From: Amphiscolops sp. MND2022 | Lineage: Eukaryota | Direction: 5' to 3' | Length of the DNA: 64,000 nt | NCBI GenBank assembly: GCA_964187785.1 | Contig: OZ076414.1 | Location: 62,001 to 126,000 of the forward strand | Shown here: positions 21,308 to 60,913 of the stretch, piece by piece | Position numbering within the stretch: position 1 is the stretch's first letter | Layout: every line of letters starts with the position of its first letter | Notes under the pieces: model-generated | Seen by the model: the letters and a program-made list of their open reading frames with translations, nothing else | Database searches by the model: none | What the model was told of the DNA's origin: nothing | Translations under genes and position numbers: made by a program

Positions 21308-21329
21308 CATTACGACGCCAATCGGGGAA
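21308..21329 (+). repeat. Left TIR of element B (CATTACGACGCCAATCGGGGAA)
   Basis: Exact reverse complement of 60892-60913. Confidence 0.97.
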
Positions 21330-21339
21330 GTTTTGATTT

Positions 21340-21700
21340 TTTCAAGAATTGACAAAAGTTGGTTTTCTCACCTACCAAAGCGTGTTTTCAAGAAATCACA
21401 AAGTTGTGCACTTCAAAGAAAATGGTAGTGCCGCCAAAATGATTGAAGAATTCACACACTAATATTAGCAGTGCAAAAATGAAATTTTCAAGAAACGAGA
21501 AAATTGATTTGTGGATTCTTCATTTTAATGATAATCTATGCTGCACGTGTAACATCATTGGTGTGAGGATTCTTCGCATTTTGTCATTTCTTGTTTACTT
21601 TTCTGAATTCTTGATTACTTTTCTGAATTCTTGAACACTTTTATGGATTCTTCTAAAAAATATGGTAATTAAATCTAACTTCTTTCTGGATTCATCAAAA
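21340..21700. repeat. Left subterminal motif cluster of element B (TTCAAGAA / GGATTCTTC)
   Basis: Several copies. 21340-21359 (TTTCAAGAATTGACAAAAGT) is an exact inverted copy of 60805-60824. Confidence 0.75.
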
Positions 21701-21917
21701 ACTTATCTCTGTTCTTTATAACAATAACTGTAAATAAAATCGTAAAATCAACGGAGAATCGACACAATCTGATTGAATTAAGATTTTTTGAAAAGTTTGT
21801 CTATTGTTCTATTTAAATTCAAACATAATATCTTCGTCAAATATCTCTAAACGACTCTTCTAGAGCAAAGTAACGACTCCATGAGTGTATGAACAACAGC
21901 TAGTTCATTCTTCAAAT

Positions 21918-21938
21918 CATTACAAGACACAACTTTCA
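21918..21938 (+). repeat. Left TIR of element A (CATTACAAGACACAACTTTCA)
   Basis: Exact reverse complement of 41266-41286. Confidence 0.96.
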
Positions 21939-22054
21939 CGAGCCTCAAAAGTTTATTAAATATCCTTAAATGCTCCACAAGGGAATTTTCACTGGCCCCT
22001 AATGTATTATTTTTTGTATTATTATTACCTATTTGTATGTTTTAACTTTTTCGA

Positions 22055-22310
22055 AAATTTAAGGATTTTTAATATTTGGTGAAAACGGAGGATTTTATAT
22101 ACCTACTATCAGGAAACCTAATGCGACTTATTAGGATTTCTAATAAATATCCATAAATATCCCCATTATAAGGATTTCTTATACTAGTGTCAAGTATAAG
22201 TTATACTATTTCCGCGGAGAACATATAGACAAACAGTATTTCTTATACACAAAAAGGATTCATTATACACAAATAGGATTTCTTATACTAATCTTTAGTA
22301 ATCCTAATAA
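22055..22310 (+). repeat. Left subterminal motif cluster of element A (AGGATTTCTTATAC-like)
   Basis: About 7 imperfect copies; inverted variants (TATAAGGAA...) at ~40975-41230. Confidence 0.65.
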
Positions 22311-22690
22311 AAACGCATGTTATTGTGGTTTTGACGAAAATGCGTTTGCAGTCGCTTGCAGCAATTCGCTGATTCACAGTAATTTTAATAAAGTAATTTT
22401 GATACACAATTAGAAGTTTTTTAAATCACAAGTTATACACTTTGTCCTGTAAAATTGTTTAAGAATTCCGATGCCTCCTCTTGCTCATTGTAAATTTCAC
22501 TCTCTACCAGCTTAGCATTTTTCCTCAGAAGTAGTTGAAATAATTCAACGACAAAAATCGAATCAAGAGCTATCTAATTCCTCGAATTTATTTATTGGTA
22601 AAAGTAAATGTTAATATGATCTAACGAATAACAAAGTAACCAAAATTTACATCAAAAAACAGAAACGAATAATTGAAAATGCACAAGTTA

Positions 22691-24272
22691 TCAAGCTGCC
22701 AAGGAGGTTTTTGTGTTTTTCGAGATTAACTCGCGATAGTTTTCATAGTCCTCGTAGTTTCCTCTGTGTCCTTGAACTTGAATTTTGAGGGCTTCAAAAG
22801 CGAGACTGGTTTTTACTTTGAACCGCACCCCCAAGAGGACATGATTGAAAAACTTCTCAGCATCCGGCCTGGTTTCAAGGAGATCCCATTTCTTACCGAG
22901 AATTTCATCAAACACTTTGTTTCCATGCGATCCCCGCTCCTCGTTGATAGTGAATTTCTGCCAATGGAAGAAAACTAATGAAATACAATTATAAAACAAA
23001 CGCTTGATGAAGGTTTCATGTATAGTCTTCAGATACAAAATTGCTGAAAGTTATGAAAGCCCTTGGAGTTGCAACGCTGGATTAAAAAATTGTTCAAGAT
23101 TTTCAATGCCCTGGGAAGTTCAATAATTACACTCCACAGTGTTTTCAAAGACTTGTTGTCAATGATGCTATTAACTACTTTGACAATTAGCATATGCTTA
23201 CCGAATCTCTTGACGATTCACAGCCCAAAACTTGCCTAATGTAAAATGGCACAGGACTGTATATTATTTCTGTGTGGCTGATTGTGTCGTAAGAGAGGAA
23301 AAGTTCCCGTTTGATGGCGGAAAACACTGTGAAAACTTCATCAACTGGGTGCAAGTTAGGGTTCCTCACTGTGAGTTCTGGGGATTTCATATAATTGATT
23401 TCCTGTTGCTTCTTAAGTGATTGATTGGGGTCTACTGACAGTCGAACTTCTGTGGCTGGCAGTCCAATGTATCTCTTACTCCCGTCTAAAGTTACTTCTG
23501 CCATCGCGTGCGCCTCCCTGCGGTCAAAAAAAAGCTTTCGTACAACCCCCGTCTGTGACAAGTCTATTACAACACGTGATCCTGCTGCTAGTATTCCGTT
23601 CGTAGTGGGAACAAGTGTCAGGCTAACGGTTTCGTCAGATCCGCACAATGCCCGCAAAATGTCTCCAATGTTGATCTTCGACAGTTTCTCTTTCACTACA
23701 GCTTTCACTTCAACTTTCAATTTTTTGGCAACTGGGATTGGTATCATTTCTTCTTCGTCAGCTATTCCTTCTTTTTGCCAGTCAGAGTTCCTCAACTGGT
23801 TGTACGAAATATAAAACTTCTCCACATTGGAGCAAATCAGCAAAGTTTTTCTAAACCTATCATTGATTAGCACAGTTCCAGATTTCAAAACTGATGCTTC
23901 TTGGATCATTTGTTTCATCTCCCAAGGCTCCATAATATCACCAACCGATGGCGCAGTCGACCCAACAAAATATACTATATCGCCTTTTGCGAATTTTTCC
24001 TTAGTGTAATCCAGTTTGTAATCAATATTGTGTCGTCTGGGAAATAGAACTTCTTCAAGAGCTTTCCTGACTGGCCAATTTTCAAGATGAACTTGGGGGT
24101 CACAAAAAAGAACCCGAACAGGGTCCTTGTTTTTTCCCCAGCGCGTAAAATTAACACGAACATGATTGGTGCCTTCAAAACCTTCGATTTTAGCCTCCTC
24201 CCAGATTTGAGTGTCAGGATCCAAAGCTTGAACGACTGGCTTAGTCTGGAAGAAAACATTGGCAAAAAGCAT
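22691..24272 (-). CDS. Tudor/Agenet-like domain protein with conserved unknown C-terminal domain (element A), 2 or more exons
   Basis: VQALDPDTQIWEEAKIEGFEGTNHVRVNFTRWG is a Tudor-like pattern, followed by a second KGDIVYF unit. GT-AG intron ~23200-22965. C-terminal GSH...LGKKWD...YRELISKN matches the paralog at 41910-43377. Start codon unresolved. Confidence 0.75.
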
Positions 24273-24614
24273 TGTTGATTGTTCAAAATTGATTGACCAA
24301 TTTGATTCGAGGTAAAGCGAAGAGTGGAAAATGAAATTTACGGTTTCTGAATGCTTTTAAATTGCGTCTTCGCAAGTCATAATTTGCCTCAATTCAGTTC
24401 TGGTGTTAGACTCAGATTTTTGATGATGTTGCAATGTGAGTCCGTTGACACCAAATGTAAATCTACGGCACCTGTTTCTCTTTTCGATGAAAGCGTTAAC
24501 GCGGATAAGCGTATAAGAATGTAGTAAGCCTCAAATGTGAATGTTGCTAATTTTGGTAAACGTTTTCCCATTTATTTCGAAATCCTATTCCTTAAAAGCG
24601 GTCCCGGTATTACA

Positions 24615-27600
24615 ATGAGTTATTGCAATGAGGAGATAATTCTGAAAAAACACCTAATCAATTTGCCAGAAGGCCTGTATGTTGATTTATCGTTATTCGA
24701 CTACTTAGCAGAAGAAACAATAAATGACAAGCAAAGGAAAGTGAAACCAGCAATCACTTGTCTCTTGAATGGCACAAACGTTCAATTCACCGATGTTTTC
24801 ATCAGTGCAACGCGCAATGAGACAGGTAGACGAGCAAAATACAATGCTGTGGTATTCAAAATTGCACTCTTGCTTGTCTTTAAAGGATTCACTGGCCTAT
24901 CGTGGACAGATCGTCTCCGACGCTTTGTTGCACACTTCTTCGGCCCAGAATTCATTCCAGACGGAAAGCCAGTAGAAAACAACTCGGAAATTAGCAAATT
25001 CTTACGGAAACTGGAGAATCGAGAACCACCAATAGCAAAAAATTCGGATTTACACGAGCCCGCTTTTTGTACTAGTAGCAATCATTTCTGGAGTGATGTG
25101 TTGAATCAAATGAACAATCGAGATTTGGAAATTGGGACTTTGATTCAACATTTGAAAAATAAAGCCTATATTGCTACCGAAAAAAACTTGTACAACGGCC
25201 TAATTATTTGAAACAAATCATGAAAGCACTGTTCCCTTCGAGATACACCCATCAATTCATGGAGCATTTGTATTTGATCAAGAAAACTGGTAATGTTGTT
25301 GATTTGGTCGGTTATCTCAAGACTTTATTTGACTTACAGGGCATAAGAAATGATCAGTTAGTTCCCAGTGTTACAACATTAAACAAATTGTCAAATCCTC
25401 TACATTGCTTTTATTACAACATATTCCAACCGGAGAAGACCTACTCAGGTTTTAGAGCCGATTTGATTACCTTAGTGAGAACCTCTCACTACCTTCTGAC
25501 GGGAATTGAATCGTTAGAAGGTGTTGCAGTTGATCTTTGGGGTGACGGGGTTGAAATTGGGAACTCGGAGTGTACGAGAATGGTTTTCCGATTTCTTGAT
25601 ACAAAAGGGAAAATCAGTCCACAATCTTCAGATGCATGTTTCACATTTGCTTGCTTCAAAGGTTTGTGCAAAAGTGATTGAACGTTGTTAGGAAAAATGA
25701 ATACTTTCTATTCAACTAAAGTGTTCAAGAAAATCAATGGTTTAAACTAAGCAAAGATGTTAAACTGAAAACGAGTTGCGTAGCAATATTAACAAACTAT
25801 AATGGAATGTTTTCAAGCGCTTTTAATGTAGTGGATAAATCTATTGTCTATCTCAAGTTTTTACATATGTGAATACAGTTGTGAACAACATTTGTTGTTT
25901 TAAACGAGTCCTTTTCGTTTTTCAAACGAACTGTAGAACCGCAGTCGATGCTTTATATTCAACTAAACTGATTCGAAAACTGTTGATATATTTTGAATAT
26001 GAAAAAGATCTATAGATTCGTTTGAATTATGTGAGTTAATTGACCATACACTTGCGAAGGAAATTGTGCATTAAACGGTAAAAAATTGGAAAAACGGAAA
26101 TAAGTCCCGAATTAGCTCGAAATCAGCTGTTTGTAACTTTCTCAAATTTTGTCCCGGAAAATCTTTTAAAAAATATCAAGAAACTTTTCTCACATTAATC
26201 TCATTGGTTTACCAGCCTCAATAAAGAAGTAAATACTTGCATTAATATAAGCAATTCGCTAGAACTTTTCTTCAAAAACATGCTATATCAAATATTTTTG
26301 TACCAAAGATGCAGATACGAGACTGTTTTGCACATGTTTGCAGGTCATGATAGCAGATTTGCAATGGAACAAAACCTCGGCCCAACACAAGTTGGAGTTC
26401 AAAAGAGTGGATGGCTTTACCAGCAGACACAGACGCTGGTCGAGGACTACAAAGTGAAACTGACGTTGTCCGGCGATCAGCCATTTGTAATGCGATTGGT
26501 TAATGGTGACAACGTTGAAGACGACTCCAAATGCGCAATCTATGTTGGCAAAAAGTCGTCAATTGGTTTTGACGTTAAAGATGGAAAGAAAGTTTTCCAA
26601 CCTTTTTTGTCAACGACAGTTGATCCCAAAACGAAGAAACGGGCAACGCTGAATATACCCTGGCAGGTGTTACCGTCAACTTCCCTGGTTTATCTTGACG
26701 ACATCCGAAGAGTTTGCGTTGACACTTGCCATGGTATCACAAGAATGGTTGAGAATGACTTGCAAAAGTTTTGCAATCTACTAATTGAGACCCGCGGGAA
26801 AACAATTTACACCGTTTTGAACCTATTCGAATCCAATTTAACCGAGAGAGGAGTGAAGGAGCCCAGGTTCAGATTTAATATCAATACAAGCAAAAACGGA
26901 CCAACTAGTTGCAATTCTGTGTCTTTAAGTGGAAAAGAAGCCCTGCTCGCGATTGCTCATCGGGACGAATTTGGAAGCGACAGTGGAATACAAAGCAACC
27001 TTTTTGATAATGTCTTCAAAGAAAACGAGTACTTAGTGGGCCATCCGGCTAACCTAGAAACTCTTAAACTGTGTCACAAAACACTTTTCAAGCATGAAGT
27101 ATTACTTGAAGACAAAACAAAACGGTATTTGATGTCAAAGTACGATGCCGCAGAGCTATGGCGGCAATCCTTGAACAATATGAACATTATTCTCAGAGGT
27201 TCGAAAAACGGTTTCCCTCAAAAACTCATTGATGAATACAATTTCTGGGCGGAGACATATTATCATATCTCAATGGCTTTCTTTGGCGAAGTTACGCCAT
27301 ATAAAGTGAAAATCCTTCTTGTTCCCAAATTGGTCGAATCGGGTTGTATTCGGTCACCTTGGGACCACTTAACCGAAGCAATGGAGCACTCGAATCATCG
27401 AGCACATCAATTCTACCATCAAAAGACAATGCGCGGGGGAGGTAAACTACTTCACGTTGATCCCATGCTTCAAGATCTGGTTTTGTCGTTTTTTCGATGT
27501 TATATCCACAGCAAGCAACAAATCGCTTTTGAAGAGTGTATGATGCAGCTCCGCAGTATCTTCCGGCCAATTCCAACTTTCCACATAGATTACCTATGGA

Positions 27601-28253
27601 TATGTAGGAAAACAATTAAAGCGAGGACTATTCAAATCGATACACCTTGCGAGAAAGATTCGATTTTTCTAGGCCTACGTTTCACCGTATTTGGAGATTT
27701 TCGAAAAGCTAACCTAACGCAGGTTCAAGTGAACAAGATGATTCTCGAATGTGGCGGCCTGGTAATGACCCAAGATGCCCTGAAAACACTGACTGAAAAG
27801 CACTCCCATCTACCGTTTTGCTATGTTTTAGTACAAAATGAAACAGATCTTAGAATAGCAACTGGAGAACCAGGGGTTGGCCGACCAATGGAGAAACGTG
27901 AAAAAATTGTCGAAAAAAAGGAAAGAGCTTTAAAGTTAAGATGTTATGTACAATCGGGAGTTGTTTTTTTGAACGTAAAGTTTGTTGTTGATTGCTTGAA
28001 CAAACGTACTTTGCTTGATCCAGCTAACTATGAAATAAAACCAGGAAATGACATACCAATAGTGCCCATTCGTGACATGAAGCCCTTGTTCAAACGACAA
28101 TGCGAGGCCAAAGAAATAATTGAAGGAGTTACCAAAGGCCCGTTTGTCCTTATCAAAGAATTTCGGAAGCAAAACTACTCAAACCTCACACAAGACATCG
28201 AGAAGATATTTGGCAAAAGACATACAAAAAAAGATGAGACGTCATCGTTTTGA
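24615..28253 (+). CDS. DDE transposase (CMC/Transib/RAG1-like) with C-terminal BRCT domain (element A)
   Basis: Motifs DLWGDG (Asp codon 25544), SGDQPF (26475), VDTCH (26721), TEAMEHSN (27375-27386); BRCT-like IFLGLRFTVFG...ILECGGLV...FLNVKFVVDCL. Intron 25662-26343. One -1 frameshift near the A7 run at 25180-25186. Confidence 0.88.
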
Positions 28254-28481
28254 ACTTTACATCCTAATTTCGTTATTAATGCTGGTTTTAAATGTTGTTC
28301 CCTTTGTGACGTTGTATTTCTATAATGTACCCTAGTCTTAAATAATCGAAAAAAAATCTGCACACAAAAGATTGTTTTCAAACAGAAGTGACTGGTGCAA
28401 AGGGCTCAAAGCAACAAGTTCTAATTAAATCTAAATCTTACTGGTACAAGAAATCTCACAGGAAATATGTTTTCCGAGGCA

Positions 28482-29848
28482 AAGTCGATGCACACATTAG
28501 TCTCGATTACTGTTTAGGAGAGTCGATGCACATATTAGTCTCGATTACTATTTAAGAAAGTCGATGGACACATTAGTCCTAATACTGTTTAAGAAAGTCG
28601 ATGCACACATTAGTCTCGATTACTGTTTAAGAAAGTCGATGCACATATTAGTCCTACTACTGTTTAAGTAAGTCGATGCACTCATTAGTCTCCAATACTG
28701 TTTAAGAAAGTCGATGCACACATTAGTCTCGATTACTGTTTAGGAGAGTCGATGCACATATTAGTCTCGATTCCTATTTAAGAAAGTCGATGGACACATT
28801 AGTCCTAATACTGTTTAAGAAAGTCGATGCACTCATTAGTCTCCAACACTGTTTAAGAAACTCGATGCACACATTAATCTTAAGACTGTTTAAGAAAGTC
28901 GATGGACACATTAGTCTCGAATAGTGGTTAAGAAAGCCGATGCACTCATTAGTCTCCAATACTGTTTAAGAAAGTCGATGCACATATTAGTCCTACTACT
29001 GTTTAAGAAAGTCGATGCACTCATTAGTCTCCAATACTGTTTAAGAAAGTCGATGCACACATTAGTCTCGATTACTGTTTAGGAGAGTCGATGCACATAT
29101 TAGTCTCGATTCCTATTTAAGAAAGTCGATGGACACATTAGTCCTAATACTGTTTAAGAAAGTCGATGCACTCATTAGTCTCCAACACTGTTTAAGAAAC
29201 TCGATGCACACATTAATCTTAAGACTGTTTAAGAAAGTCGATGGACACATTAGTCTCGAATAGTGGTTAAGAAAGCCGATGCACTCATTAGTCTCCAATA
29301 CTGTTTAAGAAAGTCGATGCACACATTAGTCTCGATTACTGTTTAAGAAAGTCGATGCACATATTAGTCCTACTACTGTTTAAGAAAGTCGATGCACTCA
29401 TTAGTCTCCAATACTGTTTAAGAAAGTCGATGCACACATTAGTCTCGATTACTGTTTAAGAAAGTCGATGCACATATTAGTCCTACTACTGTTTAAGAAA
29501 GTCGATGCACTCATTAGTCTCCAATACTGTTTAAGAAAGTCGATGCACACATTAGTCTCGATTACTGTTTAGGAGAGTCGATGCACATATTAGTCTCGAT
29601 TACTATTTAAGAAAGTCGATGGACACATTAGTCCTAATACTGTTTAAGAAAGTCGATGCACTCATTAGTCTCCAACACTGTTTAAGAAACTCGATGCACA
29701 CATTAATCTTAAGACTGTTTAAGAAAGTCGATGGACACATTAGTCTCGAATAGTGGTTAAGAAAGTCGATGCACATATTAGTCTCGATTACTGTTTAAGA
29801 GAGTCGATGCACATATTAGTCTCGAATACTTTTTAAAAAAGTCGATGG
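28482..29848 (+). repeat. Minisatellite array 1, 37-38-bp unit AGTCGATGCACACATTAGTCTCGATTACTGTTTAAGAA, ~36 units
   Basis: Direct reading; identical block at 339-bp offset (28774-28959 = 29113-29298). Confidence 0.97.
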
Positions 29849-30024
29849 AGTTCAACCTTAAATCTTACTGGTACAAATTTCAACAAAAACAAAGATTGTT
29901 TTCAAACAGAATTAACCTGTGCAAAGGTCGCAAAGTAACAAGTTCTAATGAAATCTAAATCTTACTGGTATATGTTTCAACAAAAACAAAGAACTATTTC
30001 TTCTTTTTCAAATAAACCCCTGGT

Positions 30025-33000
30025 TTAGAAGCCACACATGGTGTTCATGTATTCGATTATCTCCGGGAGTTTGGGGTACTGCGGTATATCTGTATTGTAT
30101 TTCGCGACTTCACTCAAACTTGCACGGAACGATCTTCGGATCCCGTTACGCATGGAATTGGGTAGCATTGAGGAATAGCCTTCATGTATAGTCCAAATTT
30201 GCCAAAATATTTCTCCTTCTTCGTTAATGGGGTGTGGGGATGCTTGCTTGTTAAATTTCGCTTGTTTGCATCGACGGACAAACTCAGATACCATGGCAGC
30301 AGACAGGTGACAAAAATGGGGAAAACATTTGCAATATCTGACCTTCCTGATCCTCTCCTTCATGAATTCATTGAGTGCTGCAGCTGGAAAGAAAACTTTT
30401 TTAAATATTCATTGAACATTAAGTAATAAAAGAAAAATAATCAATACTGTCTTATGATCATAAGTTTGGAGCCACCTTTTTCAAAATTTTATTCAAACTT
30501 TTGCCAACATGAGATACTAACGGTATTCCTGAAAAGTCAAGAAGTTTGTCCCTACAGCCACACTGTTCGCTATTGTGGACACGAAGTGGAGCGTTCCTGC
30601 TGGGATTAAAACGCCCTGTCCGGCTTTCAAAGTGATTCTGTAGGCCTGAAGATCTCTTCTGCCTCCGAAGAACCTATTAACGGATGTCGTTGTCCTAGAT
30701 GACTGAAAGCTGGCCAGTCCTTCACCAAGCTTGCCGGTCTCGTTCACAAAAACGAACTCTTTTTCTCCGGCAAGGAGGACGTAGAACACAGAGGTTCCAC
30801 TGAAGTCCACGTGCCAGTCAGCGAAACACCCAGCTTGACTGAGGATGACGTAGTTTAGCTTCCAGACGCTGCTCTTATCTCTTGGGAGTCTCATTTGCAA
30901 TTTGTGTCCCAAGGAGATTTCTTTCACAAAGTTCGCAGGCTCGAACTGCAGACTGTTGCTTGTTGTTGCGTTCAGATCAATGATGTTCATTGGTCTGGAG
31001 AGATCGAACTTGAGGAAATAGGTTTTCAGAGGCATGGTCTCAATTTCGAACTCGTGCTGAAAAATTAACAAAGATGTAATAGTGAAATATAACTCTAACA
31101 AAAAAGGCTGGAGAATTATTGCCGATGATATTTCATCCTACATTGACTTGGAAACTTGTTGACAGTGATAATTCACGCTCAGTGTCTAAAGTGTATAAGG
31201 TTTTCTTATAGGCCAAAGTGCTTTGAAGAATGTGAATTACTGATACATTTTTCTCTATTTATACATGATAAATGTATCAAGTTTCTTTAGATGTGTCATT
31301 TTTCAGGATTTCTAATCAACCGCTACGTTGGTTAGGCATTCATTTGAGAAAATAATCAAAAGTTTCTTACTCCCTTTAGCCAACTGCAGTTTACTGTCAT
31401 TTTTGGATCTTCTTTCGCTAATACTGCTCTGAATAAACGTTCATCGGTAAGTTTGAGGTCTCCAGCTGCAAATTTGTGTGAGAAGCCCTTCAGTCTGAGA
31501 GCATCAACTATCAACATCGGCTTCTTCACAATTCCTTTTAGAGCCGTTTTCAAAAGCGCTGAGTTTTGATCAAAGAATTCGGCTTTGTATTGCAAGTAGT
31601 CTATGCCCTCTTTGCCCATCGGCAACCATTCCACCAGTTGGCGCAGTTCTGTGGCGTCGCTAAACGTTGGGTAGCCATCAGGGTCAATTGAATTGATCGC
31701 TGAAAACACACGAAATCAAAAGATAGGACACTACAAGAAATCAACTTTTCAATTGCCAATGTTTAATATTCAGTTGTTTAGGAAAATAAAGGCTTACATT
31801 TTTTAAAAATAATTGCCTATAAAATGTCCTTAAATGTTTATAGATTTTTTAAAAAACCACGTACGATCATAGCTGCAAGAAGATTGTGTTGGAAGAGTTC
31901 GTCTCGGGGTCGGCGATTTTCTTGGATTCCGCTTTTTTGCAGGAGTAATGGGCCCGCCGGTAGGAGGAACGGCACCTTAGCACAAAAACAAATGTCAACA
32001 CAGACTATCATTTCCAAAACAAAAATTTTAGGAAATATTTAAAATACCTAGTACATTTCCCCGGATATAAAGTGGAAAAATAATACGTACGTTTCTTTGG
32101 AGTCAGGGATTTTCGTGGACTCCGCTTCCTTGCTTTAGCCTTCTGAAAGAGGGGAGGTAGAGGAGGAAAGAGTGTAGGACGAGAAGACGGAGCAAGAGGA
32201 GGACCAGGTGTACGAAAAAGAGAGTCCAAACGAGACGGAGCAGGTGTAGGAGGGGGAGACGCCATAGAAGAAGAAGCACCAGGTGTAGGAGGAGGAGGAG
32301 GAGGAGGAGGAGGAGACGCCATACGAGAAGGACCAGGTGTTGGAGGCGGAGAATCCATACGAGAAGGACCAGGTGTAGGAGGAGGAGAAGCAGTACGAAG
32401 AAGATTAGTGGCCGTTAGCGGGGCTGAAAACAATTTTGATAAGAAAGGCAGTAAAAATCTTATTCAATTCAACATCAATAAGACTTCAAAAAACTAACAA
32501 ATCTAATAACTTTATTTTATATCCCTAATATTTTGAAGCTGAATAATAAATCCCATTTCAAACTAAATGTAAAAATTCAAAATTAAAGGTAAAAAGGTTT
32601 CTCGATTTTTGTTCATGCTGTACGCCAAAACTTGTTCTGGAAACTAAAAAAAAGCGAACAAGCACAAAAATTGAAACCAATCTTATGTTCATTTGAAGTC
32701 TCTTGCAAATAAACAAGCTCTTCTTTTCAAATCCGGAAAAGAATTTAGAACCTCCCAATTCAATTTGAAGGAAAAAAATTTCAGGTTTTTCTGTTTCTCT
32801 TTCATGCCGTATTCCAATAATTGTTCAGTAAAATCTAAAAAAAACGGACAAGCTAAACTTATTATCATTTGAAGTCTCCTGCAAGTAATCAAGCTATTTT
32901 TTGCTTAACTGAACTTAGAGTTGTTCTATTCATTGGTACTCTTATTGTTACAACATTTTTTGAAGTTTCATTTTTTTGTTTTTTGAAAACGTTTTCCCAA

Positions 33001-34440: not shown

Positions 34441-34554
34441 AATAATTGCCAATAATGGATTTGTTTCCCCACAAGAGACTAAAACTAAAGAATAAAAATT
34501 TATTGGATGCAAAATGGGAGGTCCAAATTACACCAGATTGGGTGTTCAAAACAA

Positions 34555-35300
34555 TGACAAGTACACATGCAGGAGGTTTCAATGAACAAATTTTGGCTTC
34601 GATTTTTGTTTTTTAATTTAATTTGAAATGGGAGGTTCTAAATACATCTAGGGATTCAAAAAATTGACATGCACACATGCAGGAGACTTTCACAGAACTT
34701 TATTTTGTCTTCGATTTTTGTGCTTTTCCGTAAAAAACTGTTTTGGCCACTTATTGATGTACGTCATAGAGAAAAACTGAAACACTGGGAGAATTTTTTA
34801 TTAAATCTGAAATGGGAGGTTCTAAATACATCTAGGGATTCAAAAAATTGACATGCACACATGCAGGAGACTTTCACAGAACTTTATTTTGTCTTCGATT
34901 TTTGTGCTTTTCCGTAAAAAACTGTTTTGGCCACTTATTAATGTACGTCATGGAGAAAAACTGAAACACTGGGAAAATTTTTTATTAAATCTGAAATGGG
35001 AGGTTCTAAATACATCTAGGGATTCAAAAAATTGACATGCACACATGCAGGAGACTTTCACAGAACTTTATTTTGTCTTCGATTTTTGTGCTTTTCCGTA
35101 AAAGCTTTTTTTTGGCCAGATATTGATGTACGTCATAGAGAAAAACTGAAACACTGGGAAAAATTTTTTATTAAATCTGAAATGGGAGGTTCTAAATTCA
35201 TCAAAGGATTCCAAAAATTGACATGTACACATGCCGGAGGCTTCATCGGAACATTATTTTGGCTTCGATTTTTGTGCTCTCCCGTATAAAACTTTTTTGG
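34555..35300 (+). repeat. 184-bp tandem repeat, ~3.5-4 copies
   Basis: Near-identical ORFs at 34669 and 34853 (offset 184); further copies at ~35030 and ~35216. Confidence 0.93.
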
Positions 35301-43377: not shown

Positions 43378-43688
43378 TCCGAATTAGTTTTTTTGCTATA
43401 AATACTGGGTAATTTGTAGTCAAATAGATTGAGTTTGCATAGAGTTGAATTAAAATCAAACAGGCTGAAGTCATATGGAGGTGAACAAAATTTTAACAGG
43501 TGAAAACTCGAGTCTCAATTTGCGTTCAATCTGCCACATGTGCAAAAAGTGTTAATTACAACCCGCGACGAGTTTAGACTCGTATTCTCACTTTAAAGAC
43601 AGTGTGGAACTCAATTTTTGCTCATACACCTTAGTCCCATTTTAAATATTGACTAAACTTGCATTACATTTCAACCAACTCATCAACA

Positions 43689-55425: not shown

Positions 55426-58414
55426 TCACAACAACAAAACAACGAGCATGTTTGTTAGACTACTTACTTCTGTAGTGGAGGCTTCTCCGTTCTTCATGTG
55501 TTCTGCTACTTTTTGGAAGAGGTGCCTGTACTCATCACCCAAGTAGTTGGGGCGCAGCTTGCGGTAGTTGTACAGCAACACACTCCACACTGTCGTCAAA
55601 TCGGGATATCTGGAATACATAAATATTATACTCAAGGTAACAATTTACAAGAGAACAATTGGTGGAGGGGTATTAGATGTGACACTTATAATGTTCTATT
55701 GAGTATGCATTAATATTTCCCAACTTCAAACTTATGTTCCCTGACAAATTGCTCCCGGAGTCGTTACAAACTTTCGTGGATGATTGTTTTGAATTGTTCC
55801 CCAAAGATGCTCCCGGATTCGTTAAAAATATTGGCAAAGGTTGTGTCTTCTATAACATTTTGAATTGATTGCCGAACATGCTCCCGGAGTCGTTACAAAA
55901 TAAAAAGAGGAGGTGTTTCTGCATTGTTTAATGTCCTTCACTTTCTCGTTTCAGCTATATAGATGGTAGAGGAAGTATAGTGATGTTGTATATTTTCTAT
56001 ATAAAAAACTTTACCGTGTATCTTCTTTAATGTCGAAGTGGGCATCCACAATTAGTCTACTGTGCCCAAAACTCAGGAAATTAGCACCGAGTGCAATTGA
56101 GTCGCCGTGGGTAAGGACACAGTGAATCCACTTTGAAGGCAGAACAATGGCATCACCTGCCCTTGCATGGATCCTGTGACAGCCCCCCTCTAACGTCTGC
56201 AGGTCTCCAAATGATGTTGTTCTAAATATCACACATAAAAAACACAAATGAGGGGTTTTGATAGAATTCAGTTGAGTGTTTATTTTCAGCATTACCCGAA
56301 AAATGACAATTTTTTTCCAAAGAGATTGTCTACTTTCTATACACTAAACGAACATAGACTTTAGGGAAATGACGTGAAGGAGGATGTTTATACTTACAGG
56401 CTGCGAGGGTCTTTCTCACTGTACTGCTGAAAGAGTTGCAAGTTCTTCTTTGTTGGCTCAACAAGCCAGAAGATTTTCTCACCGAGCAGTACCACGTAGA
56501 AAACTGACGTGCTTGCGAAATCAATGTGCCACGGGGTGACACATTTGTCGTTGGATAGCAGCAGGTAGTTCCACGTGCTCTCCGTCAAGTACCCATCGCT
56601 CTGAGAACCTGCCAGATTTGACTCAACATAGCGGTCGATTGCGGCATTTCGTACCGCAGTAGGTGGTGAAAACATCTAAAAACGAAGGTACTTAAACTAC
56701 TTAAAATGTGAAAGTTGCTTTCTTATATCTTAAGAAGAAAATTTCGCAGAGTCGTTTACATATGGGAACTGGGCACCTATAAAATTTGTCAGTGACTTTC
56801 AAAGGTGTTTAAAAGTTATTTTTTCTTCACTTTACTGTTTAACTAGTTTCGATTTTATCTAAATATCTCATTACCGCATGTTGAAGGGTGGCATCTAGCA
56901 CGTTGACAGGAAAGAGTCCTTCACGGGCTGCTTCTGGGCCGGAACGCTGTTCCGCCAGATACTCCTCTCTGGTCAAACTTCGTATCTGCAAATACATTTT
57001 GTACTCTAGTTCAAATGATTTTTTGTTGAATGTGAAAACGCAGTAGAATTGAGACAATAGTGACTAAATGTTGCGAAGAATCTACCACTGGATAATAAAA
57101 CATTGAAAATTTAATTTGATGGTAGTTGTCCATGATATTTCACAACGATACAAATGAAAACTTATGCGGATTCTTCACAGCGATAAATATACGCGTTTGT
57201 GTGCGTGCTCTTAAATCCAGGAAAGTTTTTCTGTAAACCAACCGCACTTTATAGTTTAAAATCTCACCTCGTTCACTCTGGCCGACTTTGCAGAAATGGG
57301 GACATCCGGGTTGGCAACATGCTGCAACAAATGTCCTGCTAGAGGCAGAAACTGAGTTGCCTTGTCCTCCGGAACATGGGGTATGACGAGGCCTTCTGCG
57401 TTGTCCCTTGCACCTCTCCACAAGATGGGGAAACCATGGGCCAAATAACAGAAGACTTTCTTCGTCTGATCTTCCACGGCCCCATTCCAAACAACGCACT
57501 TTGGGACGGTGCTCTGACGCGTCCCCTCGATGTGCTCGTAGTACCTAAGAACAAAAAACAACTACTTTTTTTCCTAGTACAATTAAAGGTCTTTATTATT
57601 CTGGCACGGATTAAATATTCATCTTTATCTACTTATAGGTATGAAAAGGAATTTGACATCTGTTGTATTCTGGTAAGGTCAGCTATAGTTTTAACAAAAA
57701 AAGTATTCTATTTGACTTTCATTTCTTTCAAACTTGCAATAACATATTATGCCAAATAATACTTGAGTACTCTATGTATTCTGTAGCATAGCTATCAACT
57801 CGAATTTCCCTCACCTGTAAGTGCCGTCCTTAGCCGATTTTCTGGGGAACCGGTAGAAGTTCATGTCCTTGAACCTGTGATTCGGCACTCGCTCCAGATG
57901 GCGCAGCAGATTGCTCCGGGAAGAAACCTGCTGTTCACAGCCCTCACAGCTTGTTGGCTTGAGTTTCCCCGTTACAGTCTCTGGAATAAAAGAAAAACTT
58001 CAAAACAACTTCAAAACATGGGCGTTACGTTTCTATACCGCAAGCACAACTATCAAACTATCATTAGTTTCTCAAAAGTGTAAAAGATACTTGTAACCAT
58101 ATATAGCAAGACCGTTTCTCTAGGCAGGTTTGTAATGACATCGGTAACTTACTGTATTTCTTCAGAGCTGGGGAAAGACCTTGAGCCAATTCACTCGCCC
58201 TCTTGGCACAGCTCTGGGTCTGCTGATGACGTTTGAGGGCATCTTTTGTCGACACAGGTTGTAGACACAGGTTGCAAGTGAAGCTACCACTTCCGCTGGC
58301 CACCTCCGGCACCGGCTTGGATCCTTCGCATTTTTGGACGTGTCTGTTGTAATTGAACAACCTGGTCGACTCATAAGGGCACTTCGGACACTTCATCTGG
58401 GGTTTTGGCGGCAT
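55426..58414 (-). CDS. Multi-exon zinc-finger + JmjC protein, KDM2/KDM7 type (element B)
   Basis: ATG 58414; exon 1 has two C2H2/C2HC-like fingers (CPKC...H, CNLC...H). GFPILWRG...GLVIP (57256-57561); FPVNVLDA (56839-57057); TPWHIDFASTSVFYVVLLGEKIFWLVEPT (56394-56675); VLPSKWIHCVLTHGDSIALGANFL (56011-56220). Confidence 0.87.
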
Positions 58415-59967
58415 TTTCTGTTTTATGAAAAAAATTATTTTAGTTTTTTTTAATTTGTTTCCTTATGATCTGTTTCCATATTTCCTTACATTTATCGCGC
58501 TCATGGAGCCGTTACAACCTCCTGGCTAAACATTAACTTGTTGTTCTCTATCCGTTGCGCTCTTGGAGTTGTTACATCAAACTAAACATTTGTTTTTAGT
58601 CCTGTTGTCATCCTGCTCATGGAGTCGTTACGAGGGATTCTCAAATAACATATGAGCAATTAGCATAAAAAATAGTTTCAAATAACATAAAATTGAAATG
58701 GGTTTCACTGAACATAAAAAGAAAATTGTTTACGAGAAAGTTTCAGTGGTCAAAAGCATTCACAAATCAAAAGACTCCCTGAAAAAAGTGTGGAAATTAC
58801 AGAATAAATTTTCTGAGTTCGATTGTTTAACCGGGTATTCGGATTTATTTTTATTTGAAACTAATTTCATTTTTATGTTGTTTGACTCTAATTTTGTTTT
58901 TATGCTATTTGCACTTATGCTATTTGGTACGTAATCGTTATTTGAAACTAATTTCTTTTTGTACTGTTATTTGTTCATGTTATTTGCACCTATTTTCTAA
59001 ACACTTGTGTTATATCTTCTTTTCATCGCGCTCATGGAGTCGTTACATCTGACTAAATGTTTTTTCATGTCCTATATTCATCGCGCTCATGGAGTTGTTA
59101 CAAATGACTAAATGTTTTTTAAACTGGAACAGCTGCAAATTTTGGGACGGCAAAGCTTAAATTGTACCAAAAATAAAACACTTGACTTACCTTACTCGAA
59201 GATTGAATTTGATTGTTCAAATTGAAGTTCTGCAGTCTTCTTGTTGTGTTCAGATTGACGACTGATTGCAAGCAGCAATGTTTGTTAAATAACGTTATTG
59301 AATAAAGCGAGGGATTCCGAACACCAATTTCTGCGCGTCATGGTCACGTGACAAAAAGTTCATCTAATTCCAAGTACATGTAACGATTTTGGATCAAGCG
59401 AGGTATTTTGTTTACGTGACTTACTAAATTCTGCGAGTCATGGTCACGTGATAGAAGGAAGAATAAGAATAAGAATGAAATTTTAAAGATTTGTAGAGAT
59501 TTTAGAGATTTCTATAGAGCGAGGGAAGAAATGAGTGAAAAAATGAATGAATTCACGAAGAAATTTCAATTTCGTAAATCCTTTTACGAACCATGTCGGG
59601 ACTGAACGAAATTTTCATCGACCGGAACCAAAAGAACTGCTGTGACGTCATAGGTATATGTATTGCATTAACTGTAGTTAACGAATGACTTCGTTCGCTC
59701 ACAACAATACAATCTATTTGAACGCTCCTGCAGTTGTTACAAAAATAACACTTTTTAGAAATGTTTTAGTTTTAAACTGGTAAATGTTTTAGTAATAAAT
59801 ACTATAGGAATGTTTCATTACAATAGGCTTTTTTAAAGTTGGCAAAAAGGGGGGGGTATCTATTTTGAACATTCTACCTAAACGCTCCTGGAGTCGTTAC
59901 AAAATTATTTGTTTCATTACAAATTTGTATTTATTTTAAACATTTTACTTAAACACTCCTGGAGTCG

Positions 59968-60318
59968 TTACAAATTTTTTATGATCAGAGAGAGTTTACG
60001 CAATTTGTTATACAGGGCAACGTATTTTTTACATGTAATAATACGCGCACAAAACTTTATATATGTGTCCAATGTAACGGCATAATGGGGGGTGGCGCAG
60101 TTGATAGTTCCCGTGGGTATGTATTGGAGCTTGATGCGTTGTCTACCACTTGTTCGATCCCCACCCATAAACTTCCAGGTGATTCGATGCAGACTACTCT
60201 GCATTCCCTCCTCCACTGTATTGATTGAGCAGAAGAGTGTGTTCCGCTTCACAATGATAGCAAGAGCCCGCATGGAAGAATCACTGAGCCACTGCATCCC
60301 TTTTGATGCACGGGACAA
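59968..60318 (-). CDS. Unknown 116-aa ORF near the right end of element B, with decayed internal copies
   Basis: Open frame ...SGRQRIKLQYIPTGTINCAT...; similar DNA at ~51290-51400 and ~52825-52940 translates to a stop-containing version. Confidence 0.4.
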   Translation of the reverse strand: MSRASKGMQWLSDSSMRALAIIVKRNTLFCSINTVEEGMQSSLHRITWKFMGGDRTSGRQRIKLQYIPTGTINCATPHYAVTLDTYIKFCARIITCKKYVALYNKLRKLSLIIKNL

Positions 60319-60499
60319 ATAGAAATAGTTTTTTTATTTTGACAAACATGGGGGGTATTTATTTGAAACTTTCTACTTAAACAATTCTGAAGGCGTTACA
60401 AAATCATTTGAACCATTACACTTTATAGGAAGTTTTTAGACGGCAAACAGGGGATTTATATTCTGAAAACCATTTCAAAATATTCAACAAAATAATTCA

Positions 60500-60860
60500 T
60501 ATACAAACGGAAGGATCCACAAATTAATTTTCTTTCGTTGAATTATTTTTGGTTGTGAATTATTGGTTGTGAATTATTGGTGATGAATTAATATTGGTAT
60601 TTCGGTGAATTCATACGAAACGAAGAATCCACAAAAATATAGTACCTCCAATAAGTGACCTAATTAACGAAGAACCCACGCCAACTAATAATTGCTTAGT
60701 GAAGAATCCACACATTTTCAAGAAACGAGAGAAATTTCATTTTGGCGATTCTTCGCAGGTTACACACGTTTTTAGTGCAAGAATCCAGAAAAATATTTCA
60801 CTCCACTTTTGTCAATTCTTGAAACGCATGTGTTATAATGCAGTTCAAGAATCCACATAA
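60500..60860. repeat. Right subterminal motif cluster of element B (GAAGAATCCAC)
   Basis: Copies at ~60622, 60669, 60701, 60779, 60846; largely inverted relative to the left cluster. Confidence 0.75.
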
Positions 60861-60891
60861 GACTACAACAGATTTGTTGCAGTCACCATTT

Positions 60892-60913
60892 TTCCCCGAT
60901 TGGCGTCGTAATG
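60892..60913 (-). repeat. Right TIR of element B
   Basis: TTCCCCGATTGGCGTCGTAATG, reverse complement of 21308-21329. Confidence 0.97.

Follow-up and report, generated by a model that had tools for sequence, protein, structure and literature searches.

The giant Plavaka elements of red algae, which harbor the PAG1-3 cassette and have been disclosed in Bostrychia moritziana (bioRxiv 10.1101/2025.02.11.637652), represent the closest published analogue of the transposons described in this work. Other DNA transposons are known to carry genes acting on epigenetic marks; in particular, TET/JBP genes are carried by fungal KDZ, Plavaka, EnSpm, Harbinger, and Helitron transposons (Kojima 2025, PMC12730594). 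[quoted passage not shown] It is also known that in the RAG system a DDE enzyme is paired with a reader of histone methylation, the PHD finger of RAG2 (H3K4me3).

The window analyzed, i.e., the whole stretch of 64,000 nucleotides from Amphiscolops sp. MND2022 (contig OZ076414.1), contains two nested transposons, each harboring a transposase gene together with a SET, a JmjC, and a Royal-family (Tudor/Agenet-like) gene. The explanation that best accounts for the whole body of data, and which is considered very likely, is that of a mobile family endowed with an old, selected chromatin cargo.

Two nested transposons of a multi-copy family

The boundaries of the two elements and the features that are not genes of the cassette are the following:

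21308..60913, no strand: outer element, 39,606 bp with the inner element included, 20,235 bp once it is subtracted
21308-21329 (+): outer left TIR CATTACGACGCCAATCGGGGAA, 22 nt, perfect; TSD copy TT at 21306-21307
60892-60913 (-): outer right TIR, 22 nt, perfect; TSD copy TT at 60914-60915
21330..21680, no strand: outer left subterminal repeats, 11 copies of the motifs GGATTCTT, TTCTTGA, and TCAAGAA
about 60600-60891: outer right subterminal repeats, 7 copies of the same motifs as the left end
21918..41286, no strand: inner element, 19,369 bp, inserted within the outer one
21918-21938 (+): inner left TIR CATTACAAGACACAACTTTCA, 21 nt, perfect
41266-41286 (-): inner right TIR, 21 nt, perfect
28481..29847 (+): 38-bp tandem array of about 36 units, inner element
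36256-37193: second array of the same 38-bp unit, inner element
60914..61319 (-): gag-like ORF with CCHC zinc knuckles, in the flank of the outer element; it continues at 21307 and below

Each of the two TIR sequences occurs exactly twice, at the positions and on the strands listed above, and for both of them the number of matches expected by chance is 0 (100 shuffles, up to 3 mismatches). The outer element is flanked by TT on both sides and the inner one by AT (21916-21917 and 41287-41288); the latter lies 610 bp in from the left boundary of the former, the two being nested rather than placed side by side.

Both elements are proven insertions, since second copies with exact TIR boundaries and different 2-bp flanks, an empty site of the inner element, and a restored gag frame are all available. 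The second copies, found in the same genome, are 98.5-99% identical to those of the window, begin or end exactly at the TIRs, and have other 2-bp flanks. The second inner copy (ENA ERZ25074608, ctg185657) spans from exactly 21918 to exactly 41286 and is flanked by GT on both sides. The second outer copy (ctg185318, hereinafter L025) starts exactly at 21308 next to a different flank, and it represents the empty site of the inner element, 21917 being joined directly to 41287 with a single AT. Finally, when 21307 is joined to 60916, a minus-strand retrotransposon gag ORF stays in frame and a CX2CX4HX4 zinc knuckle is rebuilt across the junction; the gag-like ORF in the flank belongs to an LTR retrotransposon that was interrupted by the outer element. 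Both insertions of the window sit in other transposons, the outer element in this gag and the inner one in the outer element.

The subterminal motif of the outer element occurs 0.4 times per 700 bp in the interior, versus 11 and 7 times at the two ends. In the inner element, the two 38-bp arrays bracket the ZnF-JmjC gene, and the array length varies between the two inner copies.

The same termini, CATTAC...GTAATG, are shared by the inner element, the outer element, and a third element (L007), and they agree with the 5'-CA...TG-3' ends of the CMCT clade. The TSD, whose 2 bp fall within the 2-5 bp of this clade, is variable in sequence: AT, GT, and TT were confirmed on both sides, and L007 shows TT versus TA. 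When sequences were clustered at 90% identity, the inner transposase, the inner SET, and the outer transposase fell in clusters of 22, 25, and 45 sequences, respectively; recent copies differ mostly by nonsynonymous changes, stops included, so that many of them are decaying. The two elements thus belong to a family of giant cut-and-paste DNA transposons (13-20 kb) that is multi-copy and has been active recently; its members have TIRs of about 21-22 nt and a 2-bp TSD of variable sequence.

The four genes of each element

The genes are arranged as Tudor(-) Tnp(+) JmjC(-) SET(+) in the inner element and as Tudor(-) Tnp(+) SET(-) JmjC(-) in the outer one:

24615..28253 (+): inner transposase-BRCT gene, three exons (24615-25099, 25165-25661, 26344-28250) coding for 963 aa without internal stops
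44147..47196 (+): outer transposase-BRCT gene, exon 44147-45011, core 45312-46693, BRCT region to 47193
37676..40393 (+): inner SET gene, ORF pieces 37676-38803, 38893-39147, and 39413-40390, the last with the SET domain
47869..50255 (-): outer SET gene, with the SET domain at 48438-47872 and three pieces upstream of it (48970-48593, 49414-49184, 50255-49548)
30025..34612 (-): inner ZnF-JmjC gene region, with the JmjC core at 31137-30520, two further conserved stretches (31715-31359 and 30408-30028), a Pro-rich repeat at 32463-32011, and a C2H2-like piece at 34612-33746
56011..58414 (-): outer ZnF-JmjC gene, C2H2 fingers 58414-58067, JmjC exons 56675-56397 and 56343-56014
22691..24272 (-): inner Royal-family gene, exon 1 about 24272-23190, conserved second exon within 23050-22694
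42126..43383 (-): outer Royal-family gene, ORF pieces 43383-43120, 43136-42702, and 42584-42129

For all four genes, ORF pieces of the inner element can be matched with those of the outer one, at an amino acid identity of 23-38%. The introns are real (GT..AG, 53-682 nt), and the SET, JmjC (the outer one in two exons), and, weakly, BRCT domains were detected by Pfam in both elements.

The transposases of the family are roughly 960-1000 aa long, and the spliced inner one aligns end to end with full-length homologues. The outer gene contains an intron at 45012-45311 (GTAAGT..AG) and a 1-nt frameshift in a G7 run (about 46676-46682), common to the copy L025, which leaves the BRCT out of frame. The motifs DxWGD, SGD, DxxH, and E..E.SNH are invariant in all the family members covering them. 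The AF2 model of one member (P0011; 64% identity with the outer transposase overall, 72% in the core) matched RAG1 in a Foldseek search (E 2e-7, TM 0.45-0.53), followed by Transib, BbRAGL, and the P-element transposase, and the top 45 matches are RAG1, Transib, and BbRAGL. The RNase-H-fold DDE domain expected of the CMCT clade is supported by the P0011 model together with the invariant DxWGD, SGD, and E..E.SNH motifs; the transposase is a DDE enzyme whose fold, as predicted by the model, is closest to RAG1/Transib, in the CACTA-Mirage-Chapaev-Transib ('CMCT') structural class. At the sequence level, no Pfam transposase family matched either 8 core fragments (E<=10) or 26 members (E<=0.01), and a PDB profile search gave no RAG1 match; the similarity to EnSpm, Plavaka, Transib, or RAG1 transposases expected of the clade was thus not seen in these searches, outside of which lay the Repbase proteins. 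The C(2)C / H(3-4)H zinc-binding motifs by which Kojima defines the CMCT clade are not evident in the transposase as read from sequence alone; P0011 has C-x-C and then D-x2-H at 462-469, and the family also shows an invariant PYKxK, which may stand where the H(4)H of RAG1 would be.

The transposase of the family is predicted to end in a BRCT domain, even though the scores of the window copies, 21.6 and 18.3 bits, are under the Pfam gathering cut-offs (BRCT_2 at 2.7e-4 in the inner one), and the outer BRCT is out of frame. BRCT or BRCT_2 was matched in 8 of the 26 family members (best 7.6e-7), and the family profile matches the PARP1 BRCT at E 0.09. The BRCT fold is beta-alpha-beta-beta-alpha-beta-alpha; in the P0011 model, residues 790-950 alternate strands with helices, with an interruption by a low-confidence stretch.

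The SET domain, which is the only domain of the SET ORFs, was recognized by Pfam in the inner (3.7e-11) and in the outer (1.6e-12) element, and all the 14 best PDB matches of the two are KMT5A/SETD8 (E 4e-11 to 1e-8). The inner motifs aligned to KMT5A are GRGV, YHG, LGRLxNHS, and DYGD, and in the outer protein NHK replaces NHS. What is expected of a KMT5A/SETD8 (PR-Set7) protein, that is, a SET fold with the GxG, YHG, (R)LINHS, and ELxYDY motifs and KMT5A as the closest relative, was found. The protein is KMT5A/SETD8-like; its methyltransferase activity and H4K20 substrate are inferred from the nearest solved relatives, no enzyme data being available.

As for the JmjC gene, the inner domain was detected by Pfam at 1.8e-6, with a weak zf-C2H2, and the outer one at 4.7e-3 and 1e-4 on its two exons, which are split by a 53-nt GTAAGT..TAG intron, with zf-C2H2 at 5.9e-7. 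The best PDB matches of the inner JmjC are ceKDM7A (1.3e-16), PHF8 (7e-15), KDM7A, and KDM2A. Aligned to ceKDM7A/PHF8, it shows WHVDF, GTS, GEK, and LHFV, with HxD..H, T, and K in register, and direct reading of the outer one gives WHIDF, STS, GEK, and IHCV; the JmjC fold with the Fe(II) ligands HxD...H and the 2OG-binding T and K is satisfied. A domain search disclosed neither the PHD (KDM7) nor the CXXC/F-box (KDM2) accessory domains, only C2H2 fingers being present upstream. In every lineage where the two could be located (inner, outer, L003, L007, and L008), a DNA-binding zinc finger precedes JmjC in the same orientation, and the two pieces of each window element are inferred to form a single transcript. 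The protein resembles KDM7/PHF8/KDM2 demethylases, activity and substrate being inferred from the nearest solved relatives.

The outer Royal-family gene is homologous to the inner one and shares 38-49% identity with that of L003. The protein has no Pfam or PDB sequence match, including the Tudor, Agenet, and MBT families, and a search of 1.84 billion cluster representatives yielded just 33 relatives. Its AF2 model (pLDDT 85.8) contains three beta-barrels, and the best Foldseek matches are the AGDP3 tandem Agenet (3.9e-6), FMRP, the SETDB1 Tudor, MBT (L3MBTL), and the UHRF1 TTD; ADCP1, which like AGDP3 is an H3K9me2 reader, is also among the matches. The TM-scores are low because the barrels are arranged differently, and the SH3-like beta-barrel repeat of the Royal family is supported by the model and by the fold matches. 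In barrel 1, W24, F/Y42, W45, and W66 are conserved in 20-21 of 21-22 sequences; an aromatic cage is possible, suggested only by these residues, since its geometry was not inspected and binding data are lacking. It is likely that this third cargo gene encodes a tandem Tudor/Agenet-like protein resembling methyl-lysine readers, a prediction resting on the model and the fold matches without binding data. The gene is head-to-head with the transposase gene and divergently transcribed, also on short contigs.

Every structural point that an earlier note had read in this DNA was confirmed: two elements with perfect CATTAC TIRs and 2-bp TSDs (by the TIRs, the shuffles, and the second copies), four genes in each (by Pfam, PDB, fold, and ORF-pair evidence), their introns, the SETD8-like SET and KDM2/7-like JmjC assignments, the different gene order, and the intact catalytic motifs. 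Its "Tudor-like" label is supported by the fold matches, and its DDE transposase-BRCT is upheld by the predicted RAG1/Transib fold and the BRCT matches of its tail, with a correction for the outer, frameshifted copy.

Age and possible roles of the cargo

The three accessory genes are a stable part of the element. In at least six diverged lineages, three independent datasets, and three gene orders, the transposase is accompanied by this cargo. L007, from another sample, is a complete 13.1-kb element (TIR CATTACTGTGCATCTCCAAGCT) with the same four genes inside its TIRs; the same genes adjoin the transposase in L003, L004, L005 (NCBI GCA_029980085.1), L006, L008, and L025, and on four short contigs from metagenomes Tudor(-) precedes Tnp(+). 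In the three closest lineage pairs, the Tnp/SET/JmjC identities are 72/56/68, 94/91, and 80/75/78, and the divergence of the cargo correlates with that of the transposase (Spearman 0.87 for SET, 0.63 for JmjC). Between the outer and L003 lineages, pN is 0.19-0.33 and pS is 0.67-0.91 (saturated) for all four genes, and the catalytic motifs are intact in both window elements with the cargo diverged to 25-45% identity. Since the set is kept across lineages, datasets, and orders, the cargo co-diverges with the transposase, and pN is well below the saturated pS, the cargo is regarded as an old, selected part of the element. As part of the overall explanation, it is very likely that the cassette was acquired once, long ago, and has since been passed on together with the transposase, purifying selection acting on it and the gene order being reshuffled.

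The earlier note had likewise proposed an old, selected cargo rather than a one-off capture, which is supported by its multi-copy, always transposase-linked, co-diverging, and constrained state; neither of the outcomes that would have refuted this, namely cargo found only at this locus or dN/dS near 1 (the latter between lineages), was observed. It also knew of no TIR transposon with the complete set, and none of the open-access papers and preprints searched describes this gene set in one element (Repbase and Dfam lay outside that search). Its suggestion that the element may rewrite chromatin on itself or its targets remains an inference without direct evidence.

The most likely role of the cargo, on inference only, is a self-directed chromatin editing to the benefit of the element, which would modify the histone-methylation state of its own chromatin. 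In a specific version of this model, the ZnF-JmjC protein would be recruited to the element DNA and remove repressive marks of the KDM7/PHF8 kind (H3K9me2, H3K27me2, H4K20me1), so that the element would stay transcribed; the SET8-like enzyme would write a mark, most likely H4K20me1, to be read by the Royal-domain protein, and this reader and the BRCT tail would anchor the transposase on chromatin bearing the mark, either where it excises or where it inserts. This version is inferred, without expression, splicing, or enzymatic data, and as it stands is more apt to be wrong than right. Hints pointing to it are the zinc finger upstream of JmjC, the outer subterminal repeats, and the position of both insertions within other transposons.

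Among the alternatives, it is possible, although not likely, that the kit steers DNA repair, following the 53BP1/Crb2 logic rather than fighting silencing. It is known that in this logic methylated H4K20 is read by a tandem Tudor and that BRCT domains act in DNA-damage signaling, SET, JmjC, Tudor, and BRCT being the domain set of the H4K20me/53BP1 axis. The SET8-like writer and the PHF8-like eraser would control H4K20me1 around double-strand breaks arising from excision or integration, and the Royal protein and the transposase BRCT would decide how these breaks are repaired or at what point of the cell cycle transposition occurs, favoring donor-copy restoration or safe integration. In favor of this are the KMT5A-like SET, the KDM7/PHF8-group JmjC, the tandem Tudor-like barrels, a BRCT predicted on the break-making enzyme, and the Tudor gene always head-to-head with the transposase, which suggests co-expression. 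However, the substrate specificity of SET and JmjC is not established, the Foldseek matches of the reader are H3K9me2 readers (AGDP3, ADCP1), FMRP, and SETDB1 rather than 53BP1, and the outer subfamily has reached about 45 sequences with the BRCT out of frame in both copies examined, even though trans-mobilization is possible.

It is unlikely that the kit serves targeting or stealth, whereby the reader and the BRCT would tether the transposase to DNA that is already heterochromatic and rich in transposons, a role played by chromodomains in some Gypsy integrases, and the SET protein would mark the new copy as tolerated, lowering the cost to the host rather than raising expression. The two insertions inside other transposons (retrotransposon gag and outer element), the abundance of retroelement genes at the loci of other lineages, and the H3K9me2 readers among the fold matches agree with this idea. 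Nevertheless, only two insertion sites have a known context, in a repeat-rich region where chance or survivorship might suffice, and a KDM7/KDM2-type demethylase fits poorly with a purely silencing role.

The possibility that the family is already catalogued in Repbase/Dfam, e.g., as an EnSpm/CACTA, Mirage, or Plavaka-like multi-ORF family, also appears improbable. It is favored by the CA..TG termini and 2-5-bp duplications of the CMCT clade (Kojima, PMC12730594), by the PlavakaB group with CATCA termini and 2-3-bp duplications (PMC12730594), and by the published SET-bearing HarbingerS, MuDR, and red-algal Plavaka elements considered below, the last also carrying 2OG-oxygenase genes. Against it, no open-access paper or preprint combines these features, no Pfam transposase model detects the protein (these models include the CACTA, Plavaka, KDZ, and RAG1 families), and the Royal-domain protein has very few relatives.

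Lastly, the idea of a functionless passive cargo captured by chance from host chromatin genes (Pack-type), recalling the host gene fragments often captured by CACTA and Mutator type DNA transposons and agreeing with the nonsynonymous changes and stops of recent copies, is very unlikely, since it is contradicted by pN far under the saturated pS, by the gene set shared with L007 and others through three orders and three datasets, and by the co-divergence with the transposase, as well as by the catalytic motifs all intact, the decay of single young copies being expected for any transposon after insertion.

Comparison with known systems

The preferred reading, self-directed chromatin editing, takes the anti-silencing function of VANC as a working model, by analogy. 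Like the putative cargo function proposed here, VANC of the Arabidopsis VANDAL (Mutator-like) elements is an accessory protein acting on the chromatin of its own element, which escapes silencing; however, it has no sequence or fold relation to the present proteins and causes DNA hypomethylation, not being a histone enzyme. The Phytophthora HarbingerS and MuDR elements (Repbase Reports 2014, cited in PMC12730594) also have a SET histone methyltransferase gene within a TIR DNA transposon, but belong to other transposase superfamilies and carry a single accessory gene, with no demethylase or reader. In the TET/JBP transposons, several of which belong structurally to CMCT (termini CA..TG, duplications of 2-3 bp), a DNA transposon carries an eraser of an epigenetic silencing mark; there, one enzyme acts on DNA (5mC oxidation), whereas here three proteins are predicted to deal with histone lysine methylation. 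RAG1/RAG2 and Transib/ProtoRAG provide the closest solved fold of the transposase, but differ in the lack of sequence-level similarity, in the TSD (5 bp versus 2 bp), and in the termini, and no RAG2-like gene exists in this family.

As for the red-algal giant Plavaka, an assignment of the window elements to Plavaka with the PAG cassette was rejected on account of the SET-only ORFs, the JmjC following a C2H2 finger, and the CATTAC termini. The Plavaka termini are TGT..ACA or CATCA..TGATG; PAG2 joins an N6-adenine methylase to SET, PAG3 joins a ParB-like domain to a 2OG oxygenase outside the JmjC type, and no fold is known for the third gene. In the present family, by contrast, the SET is KMT5A-like and standalone, the oxygenase is a KDM7/KDM2-type JmjC beside a C2H2 zinc finger, the third gene is predicted to be tandem Tudor/Agenet-like, and the transposase bears a predicted BRCT and is unmatched by the Pfam transposase models. 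What the two have in common is their overall design: both are TIR transposons (17-19 kb in Plavaka) of a CACTA-related class with a conserved three-gene accessory cassette, in which a SET protein is found together with an oxygenase that depends on 2-oxoglutarate and is linked to a DNA-binding domain, and in both cases the cassette is old, has been reshuffled among element families, and is thought to act on the chromatin of the element itself.

Two nested insertions of mobile elements

The window, eukaryotic DNA, is AT-rich (GC 0.32-0.47, N absent) and harbors two four-gene DNA transposons, one nested in the other:

21308-60913, outer element, 20,235 bp without the inner insertion, flanked by TT on both sides
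21308-21329 (+) and 60892-60913 (-), terminal inverted repeat (TIR) of the outer element, 22-mer CATTACGACGCCAATCGGGGAA
21918-41286, inner element, 19,369 bp, starting 610 bp inward of the outer element's left boundary, flanked by AT on both sides
21918-21938 (+) and 41266-41286 (-), TIR of the inner element, 21-mer CATTACAAGACACAACTTTCA

Each TIR occurs at only these two sites in the window, and none is expected by chance in shuffled sequence, even with 3 mismatches tolerated. The earlier note had delimited the two elements by their CATTAC-starting TIRs, and its coordinates held exactly.

Both are genuine insertions, and the elements are mobile and multi-copy. The inner transposase ORF has a 99%-identical relative on contig ctg185657 of ENA ERZ25074608; two stretches of this contig (L001 and L002, a second inner copy) share 98.5-99% identity with the window, ending exactly at 21918 and 41286, with no similarity outside, and this copy is flanked by GT at either side. 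For the outer transposase, a 98%-identical relative lies on contig ctg185318 (L025, a second outer copy), where the match begins exactly at 21308, next to a flank differing from that of the window. Since position 21917 runs directly into 41287 in L025, with one AT only, this locus represents the empty site for the inner element. When the window is joined at 21307 and 60916 (that is, with one TT dropped), a minus-strand gag ORF stays in frame and a second CX2CX4HX4 zinc knuckle is restored over the junction, indicating that the outer element interrupted the gag gene of an LTR retrotransposon; RT, protease and integrase-like ORFs lie upstream. At 90% identity, the clusters comprise 22 members for the inner transposase, 25 for the inner SET and 45 for the outer transposase, and 72-128 members in other lineages.

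Segmental duplication was also considered and is ruled out by the differing flanks and the exact TIR boundaries.

Flanking ORFs yielded PLAC8 and retroelement domains only, and neither Rfam nor tRNA scanning gave a hit in the window or in four loci. The flanks (1-21307 and 60914-64000) are decayed LTR-retrotransposon sequence with minus-strand coding (gag zinc knuckles, protease, RT, RNase H and integrase-like ORFs). Their strand skew is extreme (GC skew up to +0.49, AT skew negative), so that the coding strand is very G-poor and A/C-rich; this might reflect an element-intrinsic bias or G-to-A editing.

Repeats are present inside both elements. A subterminal motif is found in 11 and 7 copies at the ends of the outer element versus 0.4 per 700 bp inside it. 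The other repeats are as follows:

28481-29847, inner element, about 36 copies of a 38-bp unit
36256-37193, inner element, about 25 copies of the same unit, same orientation
34610-35310, inner element, 184-187-bp tandem unit with GAAATGGGAGGTTCTAAATACATCT, adjoining the zinc-finger ORF
32655-32902, inner element, partial inverted copies of the 184-187-bp unit
45073-45278, intron of the outer transposase gene, a repeat measuring about 160-200 bp
50750-50968, 52195-52353 and 53759-53861, outer element, inverted copies of the latter repeat
54086 and 54535, inverted 29-nt pair

The two 38-bp arrays bracket the inner ZnF-JmjC gene and might be protein-binding sites. Array length is not the same in the two inner copies, which total 19,369 and 20,179 bp. 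Arrays of this kind were not seen in two other members (L007 and L003), and the family does not conserve tandem arrays. The 184-187-bp unit occurs also at L003 21518-22326, in a distantly related lineage (inner and L003 transposases only 43% identical); either a cis element has been conserved or an unrelated repeat got into both lineages. The gene-free 50.3-55.9 kb stretch of the outer element, embedding the three inverted copies, resembles nested small non-autonomous elements.

The transposase and its classification

When the ORF pieces of the two elements are compared, only the four genes pair up (23-38% identity). Splicing of two GT..AG introns (65 and 682 nt) from the inner transposase gene yields an uninterrupted ORF of 963 aa, with which full-length homologues align end to end. 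The outer gene has an intron (45012-45311, GTAAGT..AG) in the same position as the inner one, and a 1-nt frameshift, i.e., a G7 run (46676-46682) where the frame of the relatives requires G8, which leaves the BRCT domain out of frame. The sister copy L025 carries the same frameshift (at about 11330), plus one lost A. The frameshift could have been inherited in a subfamily that reached about 45 sequences (perhaps mobilised in trans), could be a homopolymer sequencing error, or could represent programmed frameshifting.

The intron just before the conserved GKDSRF motif is shared by both window lineages (45012-45311 and 25662-26343) and is missing from the L003 lineage, whose transposase (L003 10001-12979) is a single 992-aa ORF, pointing to intron loss or gain inside the family. 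A further locus (L008) contains two transposase-homologous stretches in tandem inside one element (7137-8309 and 9991-12015), which may have arisen by partial duplication or by nesting of another copy.

Pfam transposase models gave zero matches with the large ORFs and 26 family members, and no transposase domain was retrieved with the core fragments even at E<=10; PDB sequence and profile searches also disclosed no transposase, the only hit being a weak one to the PARP1 BRCT. The AlphaFold model of a 992-aa family transposase, P0011 (pLDDT 70.6, core mostly >85), was most similar in fold to RAG1 (E 2e-7, TM 0.45-0.53), followed by Transib, BbRAGL and the P-element transposase. The putative catalytic residues (DxWGD within the first strand, SGD following the fourth one, DxxH and E..E.SNH) are invariant across the family where covered and occur in both window copies, and the C-terminal region of roughly 180 residues matches BRCT profiles in 8 of the 26 members (best 7.6e-7).

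The family fits Kojima's definition of the CMCT clade (PMC12730594) in its CA..TG termini, 2-bp duplication, RAG1/Transib-like fold and subterminal repeats. The CMCT zinc motifs are not evident in the family, and the Pfam and PDB searches provided no sequence-level match to any named transposase superfamily. Since sequence searches found no transposase, the classification relies on the fold, the termini and the length of the duplication. The family is filed here as working like CMCT elements and probably belonging near them, rather than within EnSpm, Plavaka or Transib. This transposase lineage is missed by current profile libraries; being invisible to Pfam, such elements have probably been overlooked in genome annotations, or misannotated there as host chromatin genes.

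The cargo genes and their linkage to the transposase

The SET domains are recognized by Pfam in the inner (3.7e-11) and outer (1.6e-12) elements; in both, the top solved relatives are all KMT5A/SETD8, with the GRGV, YHG, LGRLxNH(S/K) and DY(G/R)D motifs aligned. A word-indexed search with the SET ORF returned near-identical copies only, hence SET relatives outside the family remain unsampled. The JmjC domain has as top solved relatives the C. elegans KDM7 homologue (1.3e-16), PHF8, KDM7A and KDM2A. Both elements have the iron ligands (HxD...H) as well as the 2-oxoglutarate-binding T and K in place, and the outer domain is split by a 53-nt intron. C2H2 fingers lie upstream of JmjC on the same strand in each lineage that yielded both pieces (inner, outer, L003, L007 and L008). 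Enzymes of the KMT5A and KDM7 types are characteristic of animals, which does no more than suggest an animal host.

In the inner gene, the region 32011-32463, which separates the ZnF part from the JmjC part, is proline-rich, with a 36-bp repeat (SPPPTPGPSRM units), and is 95% identical, with an indel, in the second inner copy; it may be variable low-complexity coding sequence or an intron.

The Tudor-like ORF has no Pfam match and no PDB sequence match, so its identity rests on the fold search. Only 33 relatives were found among 1.84 billion cluster representatives. Its model is confident (pLDDT 85.8) and consists of three beta-barrels and a helical tail, the best folds being tandem Agenet (AGDP3, 3.9e-6), FMRP, the SETDB1 triple Tudor, MBT repeats and the UHRF1 tandem Tudor, and four aromatic positions are conserved in barrel 1. 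The cassette proteins have catalytic and reader-like features that are intact. The gene labels assigned in the earlier note (Tudor-like, DDE transposase-BRCT, SETD8-like SET and KDM2/7-like JmjC) held, the safest name for the first being Royal-family tandem barrels.

Gene order in other family members (strand in brackets)
L003, same genome, transposase core 72% identical to outer: Tudor(-) transposase(+) SET(-) JmjC(-) ZnF(-)
L004 and L006, same genome: Tudor(-) SET(+) transposase(+)
L008, same genome: SET(-) Tudor(+) transposase(+) JmjC(-) ZnF(-)
NCBI GCA_029980085.1 contig: JmjC(+) Tudor(-) transposase(+)
Four short metagenome contigs: Tudor(-) upstream of transposase(+)

In addition, L007 (dataset ERZ1742291) is a complete 13.1-kb element with a perfect 22-nt TIR starting CATTAC and all four genes within the TIRs. 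It was the only full element recovered by the TIR scan of the other loci, the remaining elements exceeding the fetched 10-kb flanks. The genes also co-diverge: pairwise identities (%) for transposase/SET/JmjC were 72/56/68 and 80/75/78, and for transposase/SET 94/91, with Spearman coefficients versus transposase identity of 0.87 for SET and 0.63 for JmjC (the pairs being non-independent, no p-value is attached). Between the outer and L003 lineages, pS was saturated (0.67-0.91) and pN was 0.19-0.33 in all four genes. The young inner pair shows 1 synonymous versus 10 nonsynonymous changes and the outer pair 9 versus 22, together with stops and indels; these changes look neutral, as in post-insertion decay, which makes dN/dS of recent copies uninformative, and selection was therefore judged between lineages.

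On the basis of the linkage across lineages and datasets, of co-divergence and of low pN versus saturated pS, the cassette is ancient, was gained once or very few times, and has been maintained by selection on the element. The earlier note had read the cargo as an old, selected part of the element; the finding is real and that interpretation is supported.

A host gene cluster and a one-off gene capture were both rejected.

Possible roles of the cassette and known systems

The family consists of cut-and-paste elements with a conserved accessory cassette. By inference, the cassette proteins would act on nucleosomes, either those of the element itself or those at donor or target sites. In the version preferred here, also inferred, they would serve self-directed anti-silencing and chromatin marking: the KDM7-like enzyme would be a zinc-finger-guided eraser, the SET8-like enzyme the writer, and the Royal-domain reader and BRCT would dock the transposase.

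Two other explanations remain possible, namely that the cassette steers the repair of breaks as the H4K20me/53BP1 axis does, or that it tethers the transposase to heterochromatin. A bolder reading, unlikely when taken as a whole, is that these "CATTAC elements" (probably of animals) represent an uncatalogued, superfamily-level RAG1/Transib-like DDE lineage, long co-evolved with its own SET8-like writer, KDM7-like eraser and tandem Tudor-like reader of one histone mark, and with a BRCT tail, used as a private H4K20me/53BP1-type pathway to control both the state of chromatin and the repair of breaks where it leaves or inserts (its own donor/target sites); if true, this would be the first transposon known with a complete histone-mark circuit. 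Passive capture of the cargo is contradicted by the data and very unlikely.

Transposons are usually viewed as targets of histone-based silencing, and in a few cases a single counter-measure is known to be carried (VANC, TET/JBP, a lone SET). Here, across deep divergence, an active-looking family has retained a BRCT-tailed transposase and a full writer/eraser/reader set for lysine methylation. Provided that the proteins behave as their relatives do, the family would offer a natural system for studying how a mobile element reprograms chromatin at itself or its breaks, a compact group of chromatin enzymes under selection for joint work, and a further link, besides RAG1/RAG2, of RAG1-like transposases to histone-mark reading.

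No open-access text describing transposase, BRCT, JmjC, SET and Tudor in one element was found (Repbase and Dfam being outside the search). The nearest published case is that of the giant Plavaka of red algae, with PAG2 (N6-methylase and SET) and PAG3 (ParB-like and 2OG oxygenase) (bioRxiv 10.1101/2025.02.11.637652), followed by fungal transposons with TET/JBP and by oomycete HarbingerS and MuDR with SET (PMC12730594); VANDAL elements with VANC are also among the nearest systems. Transposons with chromatin-modifier cassettes are hence already known as a kind, and what is new is the unusually complete writer/eraser/reader set, joined to a transposase lineage invisible to profiles.
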